Positions 3,483 to 59,201 of a stretch of DNA of 64,000 bases are shown here, one piece after another. A program made the translations under genes and the position numbers. A model generated the notes under the pieces. That model did not search any database. It saw only the letters and a program-made list of their open reading frames with translations, and was not told the origin of the DNA. This stretch comes from Chrysemys picta bellii. Its lineage: Eukaryota. Each line of letters starts with the position of its first letter. Position 1 is the stretch's first letter. The stretch spans positions 5,456,001 to 5,520,000 of the forward strand of contig NC_088814.1 in assembly GCF_011386835.1 (NCBI RefSeq). Direction: 5' to 3'.

Positions 3483-4460
3483 GGGACTTGCAGGGTCCCC
3501 GGTGCATTGGGGGCGCTCGGGATGGGCAGGGGGGAGGGAGGTTTGCAGGGTCCCCGGTGCATTGGGGGGCGCCAGGGATGGCGGGGGGGGAGGGAGGTTT
3601 GCACGGTCCCCCGGTGCATTGGGGGGCGCCACGGATGGGCAGGGGGGAGGGAGGTTTGCAGGGTCCCCGGTGCATTGGGGGGCGCCAGGGATGGGCGGGG
3701 GGAGGGAGGTTTGCAGGGTCCCCGGTGCATTGGGGGGCGCCAGGGATGGGCAGGGGGGAGGGAGGTTTGCAGGGTCCCCGGTGCATTGGGGGGCGCCAGG
3801 GATGGCGGGGGGGGAGGGAGGTTTGCACGGTCCCCCGGTGCATTGGGGGGCGCCACGGATGGGCAGGGGGGAGGGAGGTTTGCAGGGTCCCCGGTGCATT
3901 GGGGGGCGCCAGGGATGGGCGGGGGGAGGGAGGTTTGCAGGGTCCCCGGTGCATTGGGGGGCCCCAGGGATGGGCAGGGGGGAGGGAGGTTTGCAGGGTC
4001 CCCGGTGCATTGTGGGCGCCAGGGATGGGCAGGGGGGAGGGAGGTTTGCAGGGTCCCCGGTGCATTGGGGGCGCCAGGGATGGGCAGGGAGGAGGGAGGT
4101 TTGCATGGTCCCCCGGTGCATTGGGGGGCGCCAGGGATGGGCAGGGGGGAAGGAGGTTTGCAGGGTCCCCGGTGCATTGGGGGCACCAGGGATGGGCAGG
4201 GGGGAGGGAGGTTTGCACGGTCCCCCGGTGCATTGAGGGGCGCTAGGGATGGGCAGGAGGTTTGCATAGTCCCTTACTGCGTTGGGGTGAGCATAGGGGA
4301 TGGCATGGGGGGGGTTGTATGGTCCCCCGGTGCATTGGGCTGGACATTGGAGGGGCACTAGGGGTGGGCAGGGAGACTTGTGTGGTGGCTAGGGTGAGGG
4401 ACACTGGGATTGAGGGGTGTGGAGGTTTGCATGGGCCCGAGTGCATTGAGGTGGGTGTGG
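3483..4460 (+). repeat. G-rich minisatellite, about 56-bp unit, 14 near-perfect copies to about 4260 then degenerate
   Basis: Unit GGGGGGAGGGAGGTTTGCAGGGTCCCCGGTGCATTGGGGGGCGCCAGGGATGGGCAG; CCGGTGCATT recurs from about 3499 to 4224 at about 56-bp spacing. Confidence 0.95.
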
Positions 4461-13654: not shown

Positions 13655-14608
13655 GACTCTCAGCCCTCTCCACTAGCCCTGCTTGCAGCAACATGTAGTA
13701 AAATCGGTCCTCCCGCCGTGGAAGCCGCCGTCACGCCTCCGGCCCCGCCTCAGCCCACACCTCGAAAACTTGTCCCCATCAAACCCGCGCCAGTTCCTCT
13801 GGGTTCCAGTAAAAACAGCTTTGGGATCTTGTCGTCGAAAGGGAACCTCTTCCAGATCCAGGGGTCTCAGCTTGGGACATCCTATCCTGGGGGGCAACTG
13901 GTTTTTGCCATTCAGAATCCAACCATGATCAACAAAGGGGCCCGCTCGTCCACGAACATCCAGTACCAGACTGTCCCACAGATTCAAGCAGCAGGGGGGC
14001 AGACCATACAAGTTCAGCAGAACCTCGCCAATCAGATTCAGATTATCCCCGGCACTAACCAAGCGATCATTACCCCCTCCTCTTCCACGCACAAGCCAGT
14101 GCCAATCAAGCCGGCTCCCGCGCACAAGGCAGGGGCATCGTCTGTGCAGAGCGCAAGCAACGTCGTCAAGCTGACGGGCGGCAGCAACGTAACGCTCACC
14201 CTGCCGGTTAATAACCTGGTGAACGCCGCTGAGCCCGGCGCTCAGGCTCAGATCATAACCGAGAGCCCGTCAAAGCCCTGTAAAAAGACTAGAAAGAAGG
14301 CCATGTCACCAGCCCAGACGACAGCCATGGCGGTGGCCGAGCAAGTAGAAACGGTGTTGATAGAGACTACGGCAGATAACATCATCCAGGCCGGAAATAA
14401 CCTGTTGATAGTGCAGAGTCCTGGTTCAGGCCAGCCAGCGGTGGTGCAGCAGGTCCAGGTGGTCCAACCCAAGCAAGAGCAGCAGGTGGTCCAGATTCCC
14501 CAGCAGGCCCTGAGAGTGGTCCAGGCGGCCTCAGCCACTCTCCCTACCGTCCCCCAGAAGTCCTCTCAGAACTTTCAGATCCAGGCAGCTGAGCCAACTC
14601 CTACGCAG
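13655..14608 (+). CDS. SP2: Sp2, large Gln-rich exon (318 aa)
   Basis: Sp box DSQPSPLALLAATCSKIG, repeated (L/P)VPIKPAP motif, Q-rich region; AG/GT boundaries, phase 0/0. Confidence 0.97.
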
Positions 14609-15256
14609 GTACAAGGTCCTTAACCCTTTCTGGTGGGTACATCTGTGTCTGGGAGCTCCACCGAGGATCACTGACTCAGCGGGTGGTGTATAAGGAAAGG
14701 CAGAGTGGCCTGGGGATACTGCATGAGACAGGAATCTCTTTGCAGGCAGGGTTTGCGTTTAGAAATGCCTGGGCAACTTCTCCTTTCCAGCTGCGTATTG
14801 CAAGCCCAGATTTCCATGTTATGCAAGCATGGTGGTTGGCTGTGTCGCGAGGGAGGTGGAAGGCTTATTTAAGGCTGTTGTACAGAGAGGGGTTGATGTC
14901 ACTAGTGTGTGGCAAGCAGCCACCTTCCTGTCTGTTAGAAGCCTTTCTTGTGATGGATCCTTGCAGGACTTGCCTGATTTTTACATAGCCTGCTCCTGAT
15001 TCTTGACTGATCATGACTAGGTGGAGAGATTCAGGGCAGCCCCGGTGCTGGGAAGGCACAGGAAACTCCTCTAGCAGGCTGGTCGTAGCGTATGTTAATT
15101 ACATTTAATTCCGCATGAATTGCGGACTTACTACGGCCTTGGGTGTCCTGGGCCTGAAGCCCATCATTCCGATCCTGTGGGTCACACAGGGCCGTATTTG
15201 TCCTCTTGCTAAGCGACGGCTGGTCTGATTCCTTTCCTGTTTCCTTCTTCCTTCAG

Positions 15257-15889: not shown

Positions 15890-16970
15890 GAGCTCCAGCT
15901 GGGGATGCATCACTTGGAAGTAACCGAGGAGGAGAAGGACCTCGGAGTATTGGTTGATCATAGGATGACTATGAGCTGCCGATGTGATTTGGCTGTTAAA
16001 AAAAGCTAATGCAGTCTTGGGATGCATCAGGTGAGGTATTTCCAGTAGAGATAAGGAGGTGTTAGTACCGTTATCCAAGGCACTGGTGAGACCTCATCTG
16101 GAATACTGTGTGCAGTTCTGGTCTCCCATGTTTAAGAAGGGTGAATTCAAACTGGAACAGGGACAGAGAAGGGCTACTTGGATGATCTGAGGAATGGAAA
16201 ACCTGTTTCATGAAAGGAGCCTCAAAGAGCTTGGCTTGTTTAGCCTAACCAAAAGAAGGCTGAGGGGAGATATGATTGCGCTCTATAAATATATCAGAGG
16301 GATAAATATCAGGGAGGGAGAGGAATTATTTAAGCTCAGTACCAATGTGGACACAAGAACAAATGGATATAAACTGGACATTAGGAAGTTTAGACTTGAA
16401 ATTAGACAAAGGTTTCTAACCATCAGAGGAGTGAAGTTCTGGAACAGCCTTCCAAGGGGAGCAGTGGGGGCAAAAGACATATCTGGCTTCAAGACTAAGC
16501 TTGAGAAGTTTATGGAGGGGATGGTATGATGGGATAGCCTAATTTTGGCAATTAATTGATCTTTGACTATTAGCGGTAAATATGCCCAGTGGTCTGTGAT
16601 GGGATGTTAGATGGGGTGGGATCTGAGTTACTACAGAGAATTCTTTCCTGGGTGCTGGCTGGTGAGTCTTGCCCACATGCTCAGGGTTTAGCTGATTGCC
16701 ATATTTGGGGTCGGGAAGGAATGTTCCTCCAGGGCAGATTGGCAGAGGCCCTGGGGGTTTTTGCCTTCCTCTGCAGCGTAGGACACGGGTCACTTGCTGG
16801 AGGATTCTCTGCACCTTGAAGTCTTTAAACCACAATTTGAAGACTTCAAGACATAGGTTAGGGGTTTGTTACAGGAGTGGGTGGGTGGTGAGATTCTGTA
16901 GCCTGCGTTGTGCGGGAGGTCAGACTAGACGATCATAATGGTCCCTTCTGACCTTAAAGTCTATGATTCT
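15890..16970 (+). mobile_element. 5'-truncated CR1 LINE (ORF2 C-terminus plus long 3' UTR) in SP2 intron
   Basis: Translates as EEEKDLGVLVD...[15 protein letters not shown]...ELGLFSLTKRRLRGDMIALYKY...FRLEIRQRFLTIRGVKFWNSLP (CR1 ORF2 end, with in-frame stops); tail CTATGATTCT. Confidence 0.95.
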
Positions 16971-20751: not shown

Positions 20752-20852
20752 GTGATAAGCGTTTTGAGTGTGCGCAGTGCCAAAAGCGCTTCATGAGAAG
20801 TGACCACCTGACGAAGCACTATAAAACCCACCTGGTCACCAAGAACTTGTAG
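20752..20852 (+). CDS. SP2: Sp2 zinc finger 3 and stop
   Basis: [33 protein letters not shown]; joined CDS is 1788 nt, 595 aa. Confidence 0.98.
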
Positions 20853-24268: not shown

Positions 24269-24378
24269 CTACTCCATCTTGATGATCATTTTCTTGACCG
24301 CCCTCCGGGAGGTGCCACACTTGCTGTTGATCACGGCGTTGAAGTTGCAGCTCTTGCCGCACACTTTGGTGACGTACT
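24269..24378 (-). CDS. BEN-domain protein, last coding exon
   Basis: Acceptor CCCACCCTCCTCCAG; (E)YVTKVCGKSCNFNAVINSKCGTSRRAVKKMIIKME*; phase 1 matches the preceding exon; resembles the NAC1 BEN end NAIAADMCTNARRVVRK as I recall it. Confidence 0.88.
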
Positions 24379-25753
24379 CTGGAGGAGGGTGGGGAGGGCA
24401 GAGAAGTGGAGCAAACAACCAGAGGCGCTCTGGCTTTTTATGAATCCACTGAGATGAATCCCGCCGGATACCAGCATGCAAAACCCCTAAGACCCTGCAG
24501 CATGTGGGACCCAGACAAGGGCACCAGGCTCTCATCCCAGAGGTGCTACTAACTTGCTCTGCGGCCTGGGGCATCACCCATCCAATCTGATCTTGCATTT
24601 AGCCCGTTGGTCTCTTCACCCTCTGTGTCTGAATTCTTTGCTGCCGAACGGGGTGGTAATCCCTACATCATAGGAAGTGCACGAGGGCGGCGGATTAACT
24701 AGATCAGAAACACTAGTGAGTTGAAGGTGTGTAAAGCACGGGGGGACGTGACTGGGGATCTGGGCTGCCTTGGCTTGTGGGTGCCCAATCTGAGACCCCT
24801 TGATGGGGTTTTCAGAAAGCACTTAGCACCGGCACTCTGAAAATCAGGACCCTTTAAGGTGCCTCGAGTGGACCCTTTCTGGAACCCTTGGCCTGCATCT
24901 GCCGTTAGAATTGTTCCGGCGTCTCCGCCTGTCCAACCCAGGCACACAGCTTGGGGTATTTAAAGCTAACCCTCTCTTTCTGCATGTGCTTCTCACCACT
25001 AATGCTTCTCACCACTAATGCTGGGTGGTTATGTTTTGTAATTCGCTGGGCTGGGCCCAATGACTCTTTTGGCAGTAACAATGCTGCTGTGTTTGGGGGT
25101 CCTGAACTACGGCAGAAGGGGGAGTTGTACCAGCACAGATTAGGGTACGGATAAAATATATTCCCAAATAGCAGATTGGATGGTTCGAGGGGCTGGGAAT
25201 GGGCTCTGAGCTTTTCCTCTCTAAGTCCCCAATTCAAATCAAGCCCGGCTTGCCAGGGACTGAAAATCATCATCTCCCTGGGGCGGTGCATGGCCAAGGT
25301 GAAAGGAGTGGGGCGGCTCGGTCCTCTTTCCAGTAGACAGCTAGTCCCGACCACCCCGGCACTAACTGGCCAGCTCTGGCAGTCTCAGCAGGGGAGCTGA
25401 GAACTGAACCGGGCATGCAGACCGGAAAGGCTGCCCGAGGAAAACCCCAAGCAGGCCTCAGCCCCGTTGGCTTTGCTGTGGGACGGACGCTTGAAGTGCC
25501 CCTGCCGGTGCTATCTGCCGGCTCTGTGGATTCAGTCCCAGGCAGTCCGACTTCGCACCAAACAGAACCCCTCCTGCTGGGCAAGGACAATGGAGGAGGT
25601 GAGCAGAAGGAACCTGTCGGTCAGGATCAAACAGCGTCATCCTGTCCCTTTTGTGGGGGATCGTCACCATGTGCGCTCTCCACCCTCTGCGTCGTCAGGA
25701 GCCCCAGCCTCGCCCCATCTCCCTCCACAGAGCCCCCTGCCCACCCCCCCTAC

Positions 25754-26000
25754 CTTTGATAGCATTTACCACTGCGACCGGCAGGCGGATGGGTTTCTCC
25801 ATGGTCGTGTTGTTGTGGGCGATGCGCTGGCCGGTGGCCGAAGACCTGGCGAGCGTCTCCCGGGAGAAGAAGTAATCCAGCAGGCGCCTGGTCATCAGCT
25901 TGGGCTTGTCGGTAGAAACCTGCGAGAGGTCGTCCAGCTGGTGGTGGGTGACGTAGACCCCCGAGTTGGGGATCAGCTCCAGCTTGGGTCTCCCATTCTC
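25754..26000 (-). CDS. BEN-domain protein, BEN core exon
   Basis: ENGRPKLELIPNSGVYVTHHQLDDLSQVSTDKPKLMTRRLLDYFFSRETLARSSATGQRIAHNNTTMEKPIRLPVAVVNAIK; phase 0/1; aligns by eye to NAC1 KLELVTGTNVYITRAQL...[22 protein letters not shown]. Confidence 0.9.
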
Positions 26001-26277
26001 CTATGGCAAAGGGAGAGACGCCCCTCGTCATTCTGCTCTTTGTGGGTGCCCGGAGTCTGGGGAGACTCAGGCAGACCCCACCGTGCAGGCTAAACAAGCG
26101 ACAGACGCTGGGCTAACCCCAGCTGTCCTCTCTCAGGCCCAATCCCATTGATCTCAGTGGAGGGGATATCAGCCCTCGTTTTACAGATGGGGAAATTGAG
26201 GCACTGAAAGGTTGAGTAACTTGTCTTAGGTCACACAGCACGTTACTGGCAGAGCTGGGAATATAACCCAAGAGTTA

Positions 26278-26433
26278 GGGGGAGGGATAGCTCAGTGGTT
26301 TGAGCATTGGCCTGCTAAACCCAGGGTTGTGAGTTCAATCCTTGAGGGGGCCATTTAGGGATCTGGGGCAAAAATCTGGTCCTGTTGGACTAGATGACCT
26401 CCTGAGGTCCCTTCCAACCCTGATATTCTATGA
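26278..26433 (+). mobile_element. Tortoise-type tRNA-derived SINE
   Basis: Same head as 6116; CR1-like tail GTCCCTTCCAACCCTGATATTCTATGA. Confidence 0.85.
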
Positions 26434-27355
26434 AGACTAGTCTTTCTATGAAAGTCCTGCTCCAACCACTAGACTCCACTCCATCCTACAGCCAGGATTA
26501 GAACCCAGGATTCTTGCCTCCGTGCTCTAGTCACTCGACCGCACTCCTGCCTCTAAACTGGAATTTAAGCCTTTAAAATAGGGCAGGAAGGTGTTTGTCT
26601 GAGAGCAGGGGCCACACTCAGAGCTCCAAGCTGAGTCCTGCCAATCACCCCAGATACTATAGGGCAAACCTGCACCCCATTGCTCTCGGGAGAGCTGCCA
26701 GAGCTTGGACAACGCCCCCGGAGCCAGCAATAGGAGTCTCCTCTCTCATTCAGCCAGGAGAGGCTTAATGCTCCATTTCTGCAGTCCTCAGGAATCCAGG
26801 CACCTTTTAAGGCTGGAGCAGCTGCCTGTTTGGGCTCGGTTCTCCTGCCCAGCGCGGCGGGGGGCAAGCGTGGGCCCAGGGAATCGCAGAAGCCTGAGCT
26901 TGGCATGCGCTGGCTGATCGGTAAAAGGAAGAACCGAGGTGCGTCTGTTGCCGATTCAGGAAGACCCCCGTCGCAGCCATTTCCCCAATCCGTTCAGAGT
27001 CTGCCTGGGTCCCCTTTAAGAGAGCTGGAAGTGGTATGGGTGGGGCAGGATATGGAGCCTTTGATCCAAACAAAGAGGGAGGGGATCTCAGAGCAGGGCC
27101 CGGTCAGCTTCCCTAGGGAAGCTAGGAAGTAGCTGTGGTCCCTCCAAGTTCAGCCTCTGCCCAGACCAGTGTGGGACCGAGGTGTCCACCTGTCCTGCTG
27201 GAAGGGTAGGGATGGTCCTGGCTCCAAGGAGAAAAGATAATGCCCAACACTACCTCTCCCCCCGAGGTGTGTGCCCTCCCGGGGTCCCATTAGGCAGCAT
27301 CCCCAGGCATTCAATGACCAATGGCCCACATAGGAGCCGATCGCGAATCACCCAC

Positions 27356-27601
27356 CTCCACGGGCGACGCCCACACCGGGGTGCCATCGGGCAGCGTATC
27401 TTGTATGTTCTCCTCCCATAAGCAGGTGGCATCGCTGAGCGTGACGGGGCTCCCCGAGCCGTCCTCTGTGCTCATCCAGGGTGGGAAGCCGCTCGGGACC
27501 CCAGCTCGCATCCTCCAGACTGGGGGGCTTTTGGGGACCTCAGCTGGGGTGCACCTCTGCTCCCCCACAATGGGAGAGGTGAATGGCTGGAGGCCATTGG
27601 C
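27356..27601 (-). CDS. BEN-domain protein, Pro/Ser-rich linker exon
   Basis: Acceptor CTCCTATTGCAG, donor GAG|GTGGGT; 246 nt open, ANGLQPFTSP...WASPVE; phase 0/0. Confidence 0.78.
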
Positions 27602-28206
27602 CTGCAATAGGAGCGAATGCGTGGGGATGCCACGGACAGAGATGTGTGGTGGAAAAACTGAGTGATAAATTAGCTACCCCTTCCTGCCTCCGCCCCTCCC
27701 TGCTTCCCAGGAGGGGATAGGGCCTCCATAAGCTCTGGCCCAACCTGCTTTCAGTTCTCAGCTCCTCAACACCAGAAGGAAACTGGAGGGTGTTCAGAGA
27801 AGGGCTGGAGGAACTGAGCTAAATCGGTGAGGCTTGGCTAAACAGGAGGACGTGATCAGAGGCTATGGAGGGAGGAAACACCAAGGGGGTGCCCAGGAGA
27901 CTCGGCTTGCCCCTGCAATGATACAACGGGGTTTAACTGTGATATTGGGGGGTGGGGGGTGAAGAATGACAGCAGAGGGTGTGGGATCCTCTCCCCAGGA
28001 GCAAAATCCCTCCATTGTCTGGAATAGTTAAAATTACACTGGGGCAACTCTTAGAAAATGTTCTCCAGGGCTGCGGGGCTGGGCAGATGGGCTCGAAGGG
28101 GATTTCATCATCTCCGGCCTCCGATTCGTACACACCCAGGGAAGCCTTTCGCCTCCACGGTGCTGGTAGCTACCGCTCAGACAAGGGGAGACACTGGGGC
28201 ACCCAC

Positions 28207-28277
28207 CTGCAATGCTGCGTTGCTCTCCAGCAGCCCCACCAGGGCTTTCAGGAATTGGATGTTGCTCTCGTTGATGT
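28207..28277 (-). CDS. BEN-domain protein, short helical exon
   Basis: Acceptor TGTCTCTCCCCAG, donor CAG|GTGGGT; (D)INESNIQFLKALVGLLESNAALQ; its phase 1/0 bridges the neighbouring exons. Confidence 0.8.
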
Positions 28278-28929
28278 CTGGGGAGAGACATGTGCACAGA
28301 GACAGAGCTGAGCATCGCAGAGGAATTCCATCCCTGGCCAGGCCTCAGGCCGAGCTGGGTCACACGAGAGTCCCAGACACGCACAAAGAAGAGGGGTCCT
28401 TCCCTATCCACCCTGCTGCTCACCTGGTGCCCACTTCTTGCCCAGAGCCCCTACAGGTGTCTGTCTCTTTGATCCCAGCCCAGGAGCCTCTCTACAGAGC
28501 TGGCACCCGTGCAGCTGCCCAGATGGCGGGCCGTGCTCTTCTCTCTAGGCAGCACCACTAGAGTTGCAGCCACCACACTCGAGCTGGAGGTGGGACCCCA
28601 CTGAACGCCCAGCCAGGCGCAGGGGGAGGCCAGAGCTCACACATGGGTATCCCCAGCTCTAACCTAGGGACATGGGGTTTGCCCGGCTGGATCACACCAT
28701 TGGTCCATCAGGCTAAGCTGCTGCCTCCAGGCCTGACACCTCAGGATAAGGTGACGCCCCCACCACGCACGCTCTGATGCCGCTAGCCCGCTGGGCACCG
28801 TTTTAAGTGGGGAATGCAGAGACCAGCTGGGGCCTTGGAGCCCGAGAGCGGGTTAACGCCATCGGAGCTGGCCTAGCTGCAAACTGCCTCCACGATGCTA
28901 AGGCAGGAAAGGAAGGAGGATTGGGTTAC

Positions 28930-29600
28930 CAACACCGCCGTTTCCGGACCCCAGCACCGTCCTGCCTGCCGCTGCCCCTGCCCCGTTCCTGCTGGAGAGG
29001 AGGTCGTTCTGCTCCTCTAGGTTCCGGAGCTGGCTCTTCAGCTGCTGATTCTCCAGCTCCAGCTCCTTGATCCTCCTCTCCTGCCACATGGCGGCCTCTT
29101 CCCGAGAGGCGAGGAGATTCCGCAGCTCGGACATCTGCAGCTCCAGCTCCTTGACTAGCTCAGCGTATAGACCCGTCACCTTGCTCGCTCGGCTGCTAAT
29201 GCTGCTGCCTCCCGAGGGAGCTCGGCTGCTCCATGGGCAGCCGTCCTCGAGTCCGTAATTCAGGGATGGAGACTCCAGCTGCTCTGTGCTGGGCCTGTAG
29301 AGCACCGAGGCCCCAGAATGAGCGGCTCTGGGATTGTCCAAAGTCCTGGTGTGTGGCAGCCCGTCCTGGGGACGTCTGCTGTGGAGATCCAGGCTATTGC
29401 TCTGAAGGACGTGTCCGAAGGGGGACGGGCCCTGGGGCTGTGGCCCGCTCAGCGCACGAGGGAAGTGAGAGACAAGGCTGGGACTGGCCTGGGGTCCGTT
29501 GGAGAGCCTGGGTCTTTTCCGGTTCTTGATCTCCTCTTCCACGCACAGCAGAGAGTGGCTGGGCCTCCCAAGACTGCTCAGGGCTCCATGGGGTTGGGCG
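28930..29600 (-). CDS. BEN-domain protein, exon with basic NLS-like motif and coiled coil
   Basis: Acceptor TTTTGTCTGCTTCCAG, donor G|GTAACC; contains KNRKRPR and LYAELVKELELQMSELRNLL...IKELELENQQLKSQLRNLEEQNDLL; phase 2/1. Confidence 0.85.
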
Positions 29601-30269
29601 CTGGAAGCAGACAAAAGCCAAGAAGAAGCGAGTATAATGAAATCACATCTTTCCAGCCCTTACTGTCTCCAAATACTGTACAAACTGTGTGCATGCACAT
29701 GTGCGCACGCAGCAATCACATCGCCCACCAGTGAAATGCAGCCACCTCTGGGGTGGTATGTGGCAGCTGTTTAACACGGCAATTTATGGGAGGAAGTGAA
29801 GGAGAATGTTAAATCCACTTGAAACTCCAGGGGGAATTTCTGGAGGTAGATTGGAACCGCTGGAACTCCACCACTGGGCAGGCTACTGGGGCTAAGTCTT
29901 GTGAAAAGTTCCAGAGGATCTTTAATGGTCACAAGCCTTCAGGGTTGTGGCTTTCGGTGTAATTCAAGAGACAGTACATTCAAAGCCCCTCTGACTTCAG
30001 TGAGCATTGCAGGGGCCTCGCACTTCTGCGAATCCAACCTAAATTGCTGCTAAACACCTCCTGGCATGCTGCCGAATCACCAGCACTGGGGTGGTCTGGG
30101 GAAGTCTCCTGGACAAAGACTAGGCTCTGCTTAGCTTGTGAGATCAGACAGGTCCTAGTGACAAAGAGCTCTTCCATTCCCCCCCGCTACCGCTATCGTA
30201 TTCACTCGATCTAGGGACTTAGATGGCCCTCCTCACTGCAGCATCAGAGCCCCTCACCCTTATTAATGG

Positions 30270-30715
30270 ACTCAGATTCCCAGGCCAGGAAGGATCAATG
30301 TGATCATCTAGTCTGACCTCCTGTACACCTCAGGCCAGAGAACTCCCCCAAACAATTCCCAGGGCAGATGGTCTAGAACAACACATCCAATCTTGTTTTT
30401 AAATTGCCGGTGATGGAGACTCCACCATGACCGTTGGTCAATTATTCTAATGGGTAATGATCCTCACTATTAAACATTTACATCTTATTTCCAGTCTGAA
30501 TGGATCTAGCTTCATGGGAGCGTATTAGACCTTCCTCTTCTAGATTGAAAAGCCCATTATTAAATATTTGTTCACCATGTAGGTACTTACAGATCAAGTC
30601 ACCCCTCAACCTTCTCTTTGTTCAACTCAACAGATTGAGCTCTTTCAATCTATCACTACAAGGCGTTTTCTAATCCTTTCCTCATTCTTGTGGCTCCTCT
30701 CCAATTCACCTTCAA
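30270..30715 (-). mobile_element. CR1 3' fragment
   Basis: Reverse complement of CR1 ORF2-end/3' UTR motifs (GATCATCTAGTCTGACCTCCTG, CCAGTCTGAAT...CTAGCTTCA). Confidence 0.7.
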
Positions 30716-30724
30716 AGCACACCT

Positions 30725-30858
30725 GGGGTTTTTAAGGTCAGGCTTGACAAAGCCCTGGCTGGGATGATTTAGTTGGGGATTGGTCCTGCTTTGAGCAGGG
30801 GGTTGGACTAGATACCTCCTGAGGTCCCTTCCAGCCCTGAGATTCTGTGATTCTATGA
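30725..30858 (+). mobile_element. Short CR1/SINE 3' end
   Basis: GGTCCTGCTTTGAGCAGGGGGTTGGACTAGAT...GTCCCTTCCAGCCCTGAGATTCTGTGATTCTATGA. Confidence 0.75.
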
Positions 30859-31434
30859 TATGGGGGAACTATTCTCCCCACCTTACAGACGGGGAATTAA
30901 GGCACGGGATAGAATAAGCAACCTAAAGAGTCCGCAGCAGAGATGGGTGTAAAACCCAAGGCCAGCGCCCTCTCTGCTACGCTCACACGAGGTTCTGAAT
31001 TGTAGCTGCTGCTTCTGGGGCTGTGCAGAGTCATTCCCTAGGAATTGGGACCAGAGGGCTAAGGGGAATGGGAGCTGGTGCCTTTTCCCTGTCAGGGACA
31101 GTTCAAATCCAGGCCAGTGTCTGCCAGCTGTTCCCCTCAGGTGACTGTTCGAAATAAGTTTCAGGGTCACAATCCAGTTCCTGCGGGGCAGGTGTCCCAT
31201 AACAACAGCAACCATTAAAGCTGGCGGGGAAGTAGCTTGCCCAAGGTCACCCATCAGACCAGTAGCCAAGCCAGGAATCAAACCCAGGTCTGCTGAATCC
31301 CAGTCCAGTACTCTAGCCTCGAAGCCACACTGCCTTCTGCAAAAAGTCACCTCAGGCCCCCACTACTGTGCCTTCTCAGCAGTTCTCAGTGGGTCCAGCT
31401 GGGTGACTCTGTTGTGGCATGTCCCCCCTCATAC

Positions 31435-31649
31435 CTGGTACATTCTGGGGGGGCGTGTCCTCGGGACTCCTGGAGCTCCAGCTCCTGGGGCTGTTGGAAG
31501 TCAGGGCTGCAGAGAACAGCACCTTCCAGTCCAGGCTCAGGCAGTTTGTACAGTGGGTGATCGTCTGGCTGCTCGCCATCTCCCATCCCTTGGTCCATGG
31601 CCTGGAGGTGGCTCTGCAGAGCCTGCAGGTCAGTGACACCACCAGACAT
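31435..31649 (-). CDS. BEN-domain protein, first coding exon (exon begins at NAGNAG acceptor 31718/31715)
   Basis: MSGGVTDLQALQSHLQAMDQ...APPECT; donor AG|GTATGA, phase 2; in-frame stops upstream of the ATG; joined CDS is 1560 nt, 519 aa. Confidence 0.78.
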
Positions 31650-32167
31650 TGCCTCTCATAGTCACACCTTCCAGCCCCAATGAAACATAGTGGAGGAGAG
31701 GGAGGAAAACTCAACCTGCTGAAGAGAGAAAGAGATGGGAAGAGACACCAGCAGGAAAAAAGAAATGGAAAAGGATTGTATACAAATGCCAGTTTTGATC
31801 TGACACTGTCCTAACACCCTCACTGTTGATCCAGCCCCCAACCTCTACCCCTCAGCACCCACACACACCTTCTCTTGGTTTAGGATTTGTTTAGCTTTCC
31901 AGCCTTCTCTCTAATTAGCCCCATCACCCTCTCCTCTGACCTGGTTCCCCCATCTCCCTCCCCTCTCTCTGATGCACACGTCCCCCTCCTTGTCCCACAT
32001 CTGATTCCCCAACCCCCCCTCTAAAAACAGCCCTTTGCCTATTTTGACACCTGCTTCTCCCTCATCCTGGCCCTGCACTGCTCTCTGTTCCCTTCTCCTC
32101 CTCCATTACTACCCCTGCCTTGATCACCCACTTTGCCCTCTGTCTGGCCTCCTCCCTTTCTTGAAAC

Positions 32168-32559: not shown

Positions 32560-32865
32560 ACATCTGTCTGATCCCCACCCTCTTCTCCTTGCCCTGACTA
32601 AACCCACTTGTCTTCTATCTGGAGCCTTGTCTGCCCCCCCCCTTCCTCCTCCTCTCTGTTTTCCCCACATGTCCCCTGTTTGCCCCTTCCCTCTGTCTAT
32701 TCCCCCCACATGTCCCCTGTCTGCCCCCTTCCCTCCTTGCTCCTGTCTGTTCCCCCCACGTCCCCTTCCCTGTTTCCTCCATATGCCCCCCTGTATGGAC
32801 CCTCCCTTTCGTCCCCCACCTCCTGTTATCCACCCCCATCCTTCCCTCCCCCCGGGACACTGTAC
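32560..32865 (-). repeat. Degenerate C-rich (G-rich on minus strand) repeat
   Basis: Recurrent CCCCCACATGTCCCCTGT(C/T)TGCCCCCTTCCC blocks. Confidence 0.7.
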
Positions 32866-33119
32866 CTTTAACATCCCCTCCATGTGCCTGTTTACAGCCC
32901 TGACACCATTTCCTGGTCCCCGAGTCCCGCCCCTGCCGCTTCCCCACTGGCTGAGGTCTGGCCCTGTCTCCCGTCTGATTGGAGGCCAGGGATCGGCTCC
33001 CTATTGGCTGCTGGGACAGGGGCGTGAGCTGAAATCGCCCCGCCCCGGCGTGCGGGACGTCCGGCGTCCTGCCCTCTTAAGGGGCGGGGTCTTTGCGCGC
33101 GCGCGGCGGGGGCGGGGCT
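32866..33119. promoter_or_regulatory. Bidirectional CpG promoter for PNPO and the BEN gene, including a probable non-coding BEN exon 1 ending at 32866
   Basis: ATTGG at 32978 and 33003; GC boxes near 33040, 33081, 33110; minus-strand donor AAG|GTACAG at 32866/32865; strand skew flips across the island. Confidence 0.7.
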
Positions 33120-33254
33120 ATGATGCGTTACGCGGCGCGGAGGGGGCTGCGCGTTTGGGCCTGGCTCGGCTCCCGTCCTCCTGGGCAGGTGCTGGCGCCG
33201 GCTGCAGCCATGGACCTGGGGCCCCTGAGGAAAAGCTACCGGGGGGACAAGGAG
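33120..33254 (+). CDS. PNPO: Pyridoxine/pyridoxamine 5'-phosphate oxidase exon 1
   Basis: MMRYAARRGLRVW...AAAMDLGPLRKSYRGDKE; donor GTGAGA. Confidence 0.9.
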
Positions 33255-33261
33255 GTGAGAG

Positions 33262-33895
33262 GGGTCCGGGGGGGGAGGGGCACGTGGGGAGGGATCCAGG
33301 TGGGGGGGGGCTACAGGGGCCTCCCGGGGGGGCTACAGGGGTTCCCGTGGGGGAGGGGGCTACAGGGGGGGTCCTGTGGGGGAGGGGTCCTGGTGGGGGG
33401 GCTACAGGGGGAGTCGGGAGGGAGGGGTCCTGGTGGGGGGGGTCCCGGGGGGACGGGTCCTGGTGGGAGGGCTACAGGGAGGTGGGGGGGGGCTGCAGGG
33501 GTCTCCTGGGGGGGGAGCTATGGGGGGTCCGAGGGGGCTACAGGAGCCTCCTGGGGGGGGTACAGGGGGGATCCAGGTGGGGAGAACTACAGTGGAATCG
33601 GGGGGAGGGGTCTGGGGAGGGGCTACAGGGGGAGTTGCGGGGGAGGGGTCCAGGTGAGGGGGGCTACAGGGGAGGTCTGGGGAGGGGCTATGGGGGGGGG
33701 TCTGGGGGGGGGGGCTGCAGGAGGGTCCTGGTGGCAGGGCTACAGGTGGGTCCAGGGGGGGGGGGGGGCTTGGTGGTGGAGGGGCACGTGGGTGCTACAG
33801 GAGGAGGGGACTTGAGAAGGGGGGAGTCCCGGTGGGGGAGGGGCAGGTGGGAGGGTTCTAGAGCGGGGGCTCAAAGAGGGAGGTGAAGGGGGCGA
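33262..33895 (+). repeat. G-rich degenerate minisatellite in PNPO intron 1
   Basis: About 11 exact CTACAG cores embedded in G-runs (GGGGGGGCTACAGGGG...). Confidence 0.85.
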
Positions 33896-57105: not shown

Positions 57106-58022
57106 GGCTCTGACTGGGGGGGGGGGCAGTGTGGAAGGGACGGAGCTGGGGGCTAGCCTCCCCCAGCCGGCGGCTCACATGCTGCCCCTGTGCCCAGCAC
57201 ACCTATTCTTGATTCACGCCATTGCCTCCTTGCTGAGACTGCCAACATAAGGGCCAATCAGTGTCACGTGTAATAGGTGCAGAGGGACCTCTGGGCAGAG
57301 GCCCATCAAACTCATTTCACATAGATCAGATAACTTTAAATCACCAACATAAAGGTGAAAGGCTCTTTATCCTGTCACCAATCCCAGAGCTAGTCAGTTG
57401 CTCCCAGTTCCAGGGTTAGAACTTCACTGGCAGATCCAAACCCTCTGAACCTTCACCCCACATCCTGCCTTGTTCCCTACATGCTTCGTACAGAGACAAC
57501 GTACAGAGACACCTTTTCCCTCCACCTGCCACCATGAAGGTCGTTACTCAGTGGCCAGTAGAAGGCTCTGACTGGGGGGGGGGGGCAGTGTGGAAGGGAC
57601 GGAGCTGGGGGCTAGCCTCCCCCAGCCGGCGGCTCACATGCTGCCCCTGTGCCCAGCACACCTATTCTTGATTCACGCCATTGCCTCCTTGCTGAGACTG
57701 CCAACATAAGGGCCAATCAGTGTCACGTGTAATAGGTGCAGAGGGACCTCTGGGCAGAGGCCCATCAAACTCATTTCACATAGATCAGATAACTTTAAAT
57801 CACCAACATAAAGGTGAAAGGCTCTTTATCCTGTCACCAATCCCAGAGCTAGTCAGTTGCTCCCAGTTCCAGGGTTAGAACTTCACTGGCAGATCCAAAC
57901 CCTCTGAACCTTCACCCCACATCCTGCCTTGTTCCCTACATGCTTCGTACAGAGACATCGTACAGAGACACCTTTTCCCTCCACCTGCCACCATGAAGGT
58001 CGTTACTCAGTGGCCAGTAGAA
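57106..58022. repeat. Near-perfect 458/459-bp tandem duplication
   Basis: Copies 57106-57563 and 57564-58022; the only differences I saw are G-run length (11 vs 12) and one A/T substitution. Confidence 0.95.
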
Positions 58023-59201
58023 GCTCTTCAAGAAAACCAGCATCTATATAAATCCAGTCCCTAGTGACCTCGCTCCACACTGGGCACAAAACATGGCTTC
58101 ACATTGTGTTCACGTTGGCCACAAACTCATGCCCAGCAGTTTCAATACTCAGGATTCCTCCCAGAAAGCAGCCTGGGGTGTCTGGGATTTAAGGTGGCTT
58201 TAAAGGCAGCCTTACAAAATAAAATACACACAAGGAAACAATCTTTCCCCATGTTAACTCAGTGTATTTATTTGCATGTATGGGACTGGAAGGAGGAAAA
58301 AGGTCAAAAGCAATATTTTTCAGGCCCTGCAACAGGACAAGCAGCTGGCAACCTGCCCTGTGCCAACAATTATATCATGTGTGCCAAGGTTACACAATGT
58401 GACCAACTCTTGGGGGAGGCTAGCGGAAGCAAAACAAAATCGAGGCGGTGTCTGGCTCCCTGTTTATTGAGGACACCCACAAAAGTGCCGGTCAGAAGAC
58501 AGGGGTGGGGGTTCTGCAGGAAAATTTGATTTTGTGATCAGTGGGACTACAGATCTACCCTAATCATGAGATCAAATGGAAAAAGTCCATGAAAGTTCCT
58601 AAGATGTTACCATCGCCTATCGTAACAATTGTTGATGGAAAGTAGGTCAAGCTGCTGTTCAATAATGAGTGTAATGAACAGAGGCAAGAGGACCAGACAG
58701 ACTACATTAGTGCAAACAAAAAAAGGCCATATTGATATGATTCAAGGACTATGTTGAAATCATGCTTGGCGAAGCTAGAAGTGGAACCAGAAATTAATGA
58801 ACCAAAATGGATGTGTCAGATATTGGACCTAATTGGTGGACAAAATAAGGGGTGGGCTAGTCCACCCGTCACTCCCTTTTTTGGTCCTTAAAGAAAAAGA
58901 CTTGGGCGTGGGGGAGACAGAAGAACAGATGGAGGCTACTGGAGCAAGTTTCACCAGCATGGTTGCTGCCCACACTGTTTCCTGGGCCCCTGCGTCTTCA
59001 TCCCCCTAATCTTAAGAGATGTACTGACCAGACCAGGTCAGAGAGAGGGACCTAGATAACATCACACCTCTACCTGCTCCAGCTAAATCCAAAATGCTAC
59101 CTGGGATGGAATGGGATCGGACTGTAACAACAACAGCAGCTCCAGTCCATGTTAAGGTCTTCTCTTTTCCGCAAAAGGACAGTAATTACCGTCTTTGAGT
59201 G

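Follow-up and report, generated by a model that had tools for sequence, protein, structure and literature searches.

An ancient, unnamed BEN-solo gene between SP2 and PNPO in the painted turtle, with orthologs from sharks to marsupials

What does the minus strand between SP2 and PNPO encode in the painted turtle, Chrysemys picta bellii, and to which of the known families of BEN-domain proteins, if to any, does the product belong? The locus lies in a window of 64,000 nucleotides (positions 5,456,001 to 5,520,000 of contig NC_088814.1, RefSeq assembly GCF_011386835.1; all positions below count from the first letter of the window), where an initial annotation, made from the sequence, had proposed an intact gene for a 519-residue protein that joins a coiled coil to a NACC-type BEN domain. 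Our analyses make it likely that this is a functional gene of an ancient BEN-solo family that carries no name, and that its product would act in the nucleus as a homodimeric, sequence-specific factor, most likely a repressor. The system is of a known kind, and RefSeq already carries this gene model; what it lacks is a name, and a functional study would be the first.

The six minus-strand exons proposed for this gene (Table 1) were reproduced exactly. Joined, they give a coding sequence (CDS) of 1560 nt that translates uninterrupted into 519 aa with a single stop at its end; as checked by eye and by script, all donors are GT, all acceptors are AG with pyrimidine tracts, and the phases run 2,1,0,0,1. 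Exon 4 is the sole 246-nt open AG...GT segment within the intron space between exons 3 and 5. A TGA stands in frame 9 nt 5' of the ATG, which makes it impossible for upstream exons, including a hidden BTB-coding exon, to extend the open reading frame (ORF). The product is 100% identical to XP_008160913.3 / XP_023956524.2, uncharacterized protein LOC101935747 isoform X1 of Chrysemys picta bellii, and the acidic N-terminus, the KNRKRPR motif, the heptad-rich helix and the BEN sequence from residue 407 (KLELIPNSGVY...) that had been read from the letters were all found in it. The placement between SP2 and PNPO likewise held, with both genes flanking it on the plus strand. Full-text literature searches on LOC101935747 and on five LOC identifiers of its orthologs returned no publication. 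Two further predicted RefSeq isoforms, X3 of 493 aa and X4 of 489 aa, have their first 478 aa in common with X1 and continue into out-of-frame tails, apparently through a GTAAAT donor inside exon 5. Their products would be without BEN alpha4-alpha5, the DNA-reading part, and could be either regulated dominant-negative forms or prediction noise.

Selection on the CDS was evaluated by Nei-Gojobori estimates of the ratio of nonsynonymous to synonymous substitution rates (dN/dS) against the hawksbill turtle, Eretmochelys imbricata, in which all six exon lengths are identical. The ratio was 0.246 for the whole CDS (dS 0.124) and fell to 0.07 in both the coiled coil and the BEN region, with 0.34 in the N-terminal region and 0.30 in the linker. 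Against alligator it was 0.155 over 343 ungapped codons and 0.052 for exon 5, a comparison made by ungapped high-scoring segment pairs with an old assembly that has a 35-nt discrepancy in exon 2; overall, the BEN exons ranged over 0.05-0.12 and exon 5 over 0.05-0.07. The ratio is well below 1 against both species (0.25 for hawksbill, 0.16 for alligator), so that selection is purifying and a decaying ORF is excluded; the gene is intact, as had been claimed. Indirect hints that the turtle gene is expressed come from the contents of assemblies and RNA runs: fourteen small assemblies (54-218 Mb, far below turtle genome size) contain 77-100% of the sampled words of exon 2 and are absent among the top holders of a 5.4-kb intron-containing stretch, and six RNA-recorded runs contain 6-11% of that stretch, which is 22% exonic. 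A frog ortholog is found on a 1730-nt Logan contig from an RNA run, and as this contig is intronless it represents a spliced transcript.

Searching the product against Pfam revealed BEN (PF10523) as the sole domain above threshold, at 46.1 bits against a gathering cutoff of 23.2 (E 5.9e-12; residues 437-504, profile positions 2-76 of 76). Exon 5 by itself scores 35 bits, and the remaining matches were to sub-threshold coiled-coil families. BTB (PF00651) was absent at E up to 0.1 in the turtle protein and in its opossum, shark and Lingula relatives. With one BEN domain and no other recognised domain, the protein belongs to the BEN-solo class in the operational sense of Dai et al. AlphaFold2, run on a 41-sequence alignment, returned disorder at residues 1-204 and 321-383, a long helix at 205-276 with a predicted local distance difference test score (pLDDT) of 84-96, a second helix at 299-320, and a confident BEN fold at 388-518 (pLDDT about 90). 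The conserved blocks of a multi-species alignment coincide with both helices, the BEN domain, the basic motif at residues 97-103 and the LPDGTPVWASPVEENG lead-in. Residues 1-70 hold 13 D/E against 2 K/R, and the basic motif is a probable nuclear localisation signal. When exon 2 was used to query the features of the ESM Atlas, no match exceeded 0.89 and none pointed to an informative family.

Among BEN proteins, NACC1 is nearest by sequence, by profile and by fold. A phmmer search with residues 385-519 gave NACC1 BEN as the best solved relative (E 8e-12), and a family profile built without NACC sequences and run against the PDB ranked NACC1 (E 3e-20) ahead of BANP (7.5e-4), Insv (1.8e-3) and BEND6 (0.12). 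Foldseek against the PDB placed the NACC1 BEN-DNA structure 8yzs first (E 8e-6, 33% identity), next Insv and Bsg25A (template modelling score by target 0.82-0.84) and then BANP, BEND6 and BEND3, with a probability of 1.00 to the NACC1, Insv, Bsg25A, BANP and BEND6 BEN structures; in this model alpha5 and the alpha3-alpha4 loop are positioned as in DNA-bound BEN structures. The corresponding fold search of Swiss-Prot was led by NACC1, BEND4, BEND7 and NACC2 at 13-18% identity, with no ortholog among them, and BEND5/BEND6 came at ranks 13-16 with 15-17% identity. An exhaustive HMMER search with exon 5 brought up close relatives of full length and no BEND4 or BEND7 match. Insv was also considered as a direct ortholog and rejected, as it scores far weaker than NACC1 against the family profile.

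These comparisons uphold the proposal of a NACC-type BEN domain in a BTB-less coiled-coil architecture. NACC1 and NACC2 (BEND8/BEND9) have in common with the turtle protein two N-terminal beta strands plus five BEN helices and three motifs: Arg-Arg in helix alpha2, Gly-x-Arg in the loop between alpha3 and alpha4, and Cys-x3-Arg-Arg in helix alpha5. They differ in their loop and alpha5 signatures (SCGTGIRSSTxD / AADMCTNARR in NACC, SSATGQRIAHN / INSKCGTSRR in turtle), in their locus and in their BTB/POZ domain, in place of which dimerisation of the turtle protein would come from the coiled coil. Insv, Elba1 (Bsg25A), Elba2, BEND5 and BEND6 resemble the turtle protein in having a single C-terminal BEN domain with a helical or coiled-coil region upstream, but their sequence similarity to it is weak (13-24% identity) and does not indicate orthology. 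BANP, BEND4 and BEND7 fall in the same BEN class by alpha5 and the alpha3-alpha4 loop, at only 14-22% identity to the turtle BEN domain. BANP oligomerises through a coiled coil (PMC11472053); it reads unmethylated CGCG and, unlike the turtle protein, has an additional C-terminal DNA-binding domain.

A tree of BEN sequences further separated the family from NACC2, which formed its own long branch with 100/100 support; the tree contained NACC2 and not NACC1, and a NACC2-seeded search gave only NACC2 among its best 120. Placements of NACC2 outside and inside the group of the family plus its invertebrate relatives did not differ significantly by the approximately unbiased test (p 0.40, long branches). 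NACC2 proteins all carry PF00651, and both NACC2 and the BEN-solo gene are present in Elgaria, Eublepharis, Varanus, Vombatus and Apteryx; as NACC2 is a separate branch that coexists with the BEN-solo gene in the same species, the two are paralogs. Xenopus laevis similarly has a Swiss-Prot BEND5 plus the BEN-solo gene. The NACC2 BEN sequence is identical from echidna and whale to lizards and kiwi, a constraint equal to that of the BEN-solo family, and vertebrate family members are without an 8-residue alpha4-alpha5 insert that is present in the invertebrate relatives.

How the protein might contact DNA was read from the contacts published for NACC1 (PMC11472053), mapped onto turtle residues through NACC1 and BEN-family alignments. 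Two of the four base-reading residues are retained, R469 as R509 and the minor-groove R421 as R460, and two are changed, D462 to S502 and T465 to G505. Among phosphate contacts, R400 / R401 (R439 / R440 here) and R468 (R508) are retained, R472 is conservatively replaced by K512, and N466, R429 and S423 are changed to T506, E469 and A462; by count, the turtle protein keeps five of six Arg/Lys contacts. Exon 5 carries R439/R440 and G458-R460, the equivalents of DNA contacts in the NACC1 alignment, and helix alpha5 in exon 6 is the predicted major-groove reading helix. The retained contacts are invariant or nearly so within the family, and most of them (R460, R508, R509) are also present in NACC2; the replaced positions make up a signature of the family, INSKC[GA]T[SA]RR, which is itself unchanged between molluscs and turtles. 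Read most simply, these sequences would mean that the scaffold for DNA binding is conserved and that its specificity is a different one, under strong constraint. Because two of the four base-reading residues are replaced by residues that are themselves family-invariant, the target motif probably differs from the CATG of NACC1.

For the coiled coil, a two-copy model of residues 203-322 gave an interaction prediction score from aligned errors (ipSAE) of 0.38 against 0.00 for the best control, above the mark of the tool, which is reached by 21/30 solved homodimers and 0/23 solved single chains (eukaryotes 17/29 and 0/30). Runs had at least 55% of contacts in common, with partner pLDDT of at least 66. 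Contacts were i-to-i at a spacing of 3-4 residues and spanned positions 210-274, which indicates a parallel, in-register coiled coil, so that in the model the segment most likely forms a parallel in-register homodimer.

Taken with what is published on the relatives, these observations lead to a working model. BEN-solo and NACC proteins behave as repressors and dimers (PMC4281564, PMC8887127), and the BEN-solo factors Insv, Elba and BEND5/6 act as homodimers on palindromes and as repressors. By analogy, the turtle protein would enter the nucleus as a coiled-coil homodimer, each BEN domain would reach into the major groove with helix alpha5 and into the minor groove with Arg460, an invariant residue of its alpha3-alpha4 loop, and the dimer would read a bipartite or palindromic site. 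Nearby genes might then be regulated, and most likely repressed, following the precedent of Insv, Elba, BEND5/6 and the NACC proteins. What the data show directly is the structure of the gene, its match to the RefSeq model, the BEN membership and fold, the purifying selection, the phylogenetic range and the synteny. The nuclear location, the binding to DNA, the repression and the different motif are what we infer here, and dimerisation is the part that a structural model supports.

Several points weigh against this model. The dimer score is modest, the tool may pass the model because it remembers coiled coils already solved, and it was calibrated on solved structures rather than on predicted or disordered chains. 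The phosphate contacts R429 and S423 of NACC1 are replaced by E469 and A462, and mutation of NACC1 R429 to alanine costs >95% of its affinity (PMC11472053). Some BEN domains, such as BEND3 BD1, are without specific DNA binding and recognise proteins instead (PMC8887127). The same replacements could be taken to mean that the turtle BEN domain is mainly a protein-interaction module, for instance one that a different DNA-binding factor recruits as a corepressor adaptor. Insv and BEND6 use their BEN domains to bind CSL, BEN domains serve DNA and protein recognition alike (PMC8887127, PMC4281564), and a BEN surface that is near-invariant as a whole would fit a conserved protein partner too. We nevertheless regard an adaptor role as unlikely, because R439/R440, G458, R460, R508/R509 and K512 are family-invariant and common with NACC2, helix alpha5 is basic and the most conserved element, and the structures nearest to it in sequence and fold are, without exception, BEN domains bound to DNA.

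The sequence-specific factor is also preferred to two further explanations, each of which we judge very improbable. One of them makes the turtle gene an ortholog of NACC1/NACC2 or BEND5/BEND6, or else a lineage-specific duplicate or a splice form of one of these without BTB. NACC1 and NACC2 are indeed the nearest named relatives, and BEND5 and BEND6, as drawn in Fig. 1A of PMC11472053, also combine a coiled coil with a single BEN domain. Yet identity to NACC over the BEN domain is only 31-33%, whereas orthologs from shark to turtle have 69-96%; NACC2 keeps its 100/100 branch and stands beside the BEN-solo gene in five species, BTB is missing from the turtle protein, BEND6 reached a profile E of only 0.12, BEND5 coexists with the BEN-solo gene in Xenopus laevis, and the gene has its own conserved locus beside PNPO. 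The statement that the protein matches none of the mammalian BEND proteins stands; it is an ortholog of no named BEND or NACC gene, and its orthologs are all listed as uncharacterized. The other explanation, that the turtle ORF is decaying or no longer functional, or was produced by gene prediction, with no protein expressed, could draw on the BEN-truncating isoforms X3 and X4. It would have to account for an intact ORF whose exon lengths are equal in a turtle at dS 0.12, for dN/dS of 0.25 overall and 0.07 in the domains, with which alligator agrees, for the fourteen small assemblies that contain most or all sampled words of exon 2 and are absent among the top holders of the intron-containing stretch, and for a frog ortholog assembled as a spliced mRNA.

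To place the gene among animals, a search with the hawksbill ortholog yielded 104 proteins, all labelled either 'uncharacterized' or 'BEN domain-containing'. Orthologs are present in turtles, Alligator, tuatara, many lizards, many birds (with models that are often shorter), coelacanth and several sharks, as well as in caecilians, salamanders and frogs, including Xenopus laevis LOC495228 and XB5788060.S. Marsupials contribute at least 11 species, from Monodelphis, Gracilinanus, Trichosurus, Phascolarctos, Notamacropus, Vombatus, Petaurus, Macrotis, Sminthopsis, Sarcophilus and Antechinus. Over the BEN region, orthologs across the range from shark to turtle have 69-96% identity, and turtle has 85-96% identity with both coelacanth and marsupials. 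Eutherian, monotreme and ray-finned-fish orthologs were not found among these 104 annotated proteins, and as identity of this degree would have allowed an annotated ortholog to be detected, the gene appears, on the basis of annotated proteins rather than genomes, to have been lost in eutherians, monotremes and ray-finned fish. A literature search on the loss of BEN genes in eutherians found nothing.

The loop and alpha5 signatures recur in more distant relatives from the scallop Argopecten and the brachiopod Lingula, and in unnamed environmental proteins. The Lingula protein has a coiled coil upstream of its BEN domain, plus an IHFLQNL...LEQ helix, and its motif IHFLQNLCTALEQ is related to the NIQFLKxLVGLLES helix of exon 3. 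The invertebrate range is drawn from few exon-5 HMMER matches, and a word-based search with the Lingula relative gave only itself. A reptile-specific gene is rejected by the bird, amphibian, coelacanth, shark and marsupial orthologs together with the lophotrochozoan relatives, so that of the suggestion of an uncharacterised factor retained in reptiles, the uncharacterised and unnamed status survives and the restriction to reptiles does not, as orthologs span sharks to marsupials.

Synteny follows the same distribution. PNPO lies head-to-head with the ortholog in alligator, hawksbill, opossum and the shark Heptranchias, and a C2H2 zinc-finger gene lies on the gene's other side in all four; the opossum order is PRR15L-PNPO-BEN gene-SP2-like zinc-finger gene. 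The linkage to PNPO is thereby kept in turtle, alligator, opossum and shark, and the head-to-head arrangement has been kept since sharks.

What became of the locus in eutherians is a question that the position itself raises. We take the human long non-coding RNA (lncRNA) SP2-AS1 to lie antisense to SP2, between SP2 and PNPO, in the same place and orientation as the turtle gene. Comparison of positions leads to the hypothesis that SP2-AS1 descends from the BEN-solo gene, with which it is compatible that the marsupial gene is still coding here, that a eutherian protein ortholog was not found and that the alligator gene range runs antisense across SP2. In Alligator sinensis, the annotated range of the ortholog extends about 18 kb past the stop and overlaps the opposite-strand SP2-like zinc-finger gene; therefore some transcripts run antisense through SP2, which recalls human SP2-AS1. 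SP2-AS1 itself appeared in our literature search in cancer signature papers only. A wider proposal, which we put forward tentatively and hold to be less likely than not, is that the gene represents a tenth vertebrate BEN family, so far overlooked and with bilaterian roots, a non-BTB sister of the NACC BEN domain with a conserved DNA motif of its own, whose coding capacity was lost in eutherians and whose unit persists there as SP2-AS1. If true, this would be a datable change from a protein-coding gene to a lncRNA. The locus is a clean case in which to study what happens, in eutherians, to the place of a gene that has been lost.

Work on BEN proteins has been framed by nine human genes and three fly BEN-solo factors, and the latter are said to have no direct vertebrate orthologs (PMC8887127). 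The locus described here provides a further, deeply conserved BEN-solo gene, whose BEN domain has barely changed across the divergence of coelacanth, marsupials and turtle. As eutherians appear to have lost the gene, studies centred on human and mouse do not see it. It allows a natural comparison of how sequence specificity is set in NACC-type BEN domains, and in Xenopus, chicken or opossum it could be taken up as a candidate regulator.

Table 1. Positions in the window of the BEN-solo gene, its parts and its neighbours.
Feature	Position	Strand	Description
Coding exon 1	31435..31649	-	ATG at 31649, phase-2 donor; acidic disordered N-terminus; length equal in Eretmochelys
Coding exon 2	28930..29600	-	671 nt; disordered Ser/Pro-rich region, basic motif and coiled coil
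Basic motif KNRKRPR, residues 97-103	29507..29527	-	K100 nearly invariant; RKRP-like core from shark to turtle
Coiled-coil helix, residues 205-276	28988..29203	-	AlphaFold2; dN/dS 0.07; many columns invariant
Coding exon 3	28207..28277	-	71 nt; conserved helix NIQFLKxLVGLLES, residues 299-320
Coding exon 4	27356..27601	-	246 nt; disordered linker; conserved LPDGTPVWASPVEENG lead-in to BEN at its end
Coding exon 5	25754..26000	-	247 nt; BEN N-terminal beta strands and helices alpha1-alpha4
Alternative donor, internal GT (GTAAAT) after residue 478	25767..25768	-	Isoforms X3/X4
Coding exon 6	24269..24378	-	110 nt including TAG 24271-24269; BEN helix alpha5 INSKCGTSRRAVKK, residues about 496-518
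SP2	large exon 13655-14620; last zinc-finger exon ends near 20849	+	Tail-to-tail with the BEN gene
PNPO	starts about 33200	+	Head-to-head with the BEN gene

Around the gene, a CpG-rich stretch at 32800-33400 coincides with the start of PNPO (GC 0.71, CpG observed/expected 0.54), and an acceptor-like site stands near 31720, 5' of the ATG. The acceptor-like site suggests a non-coding first exon and perhaps a bidirectional promoter common with PNPO. Elsewhere in the window, positions 3488-4257 hold a G+C-rich minisatellite (unit 55-56 bp, 13.8 copies, 92% matches) that lies upstream of SP2 or within its 5' part and yields long spurious ORFs in six frames. At 57106-58027 a 459-bp unit is repeated in tandem (2.0 copies); its copies are 99% identical, pointing to a duplication of very recent date. 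Two open segments, 16191-16526 (+) in an SP2 intron and 30481-30621 (-) in intron 1 of the BEN gene, encode peptides of the form ...LTKRRLRGD.I..YKY..., which we take to be typical of the C-terminal end of ORF2 of a CR1-type long interspersed nuclear element (LINE).

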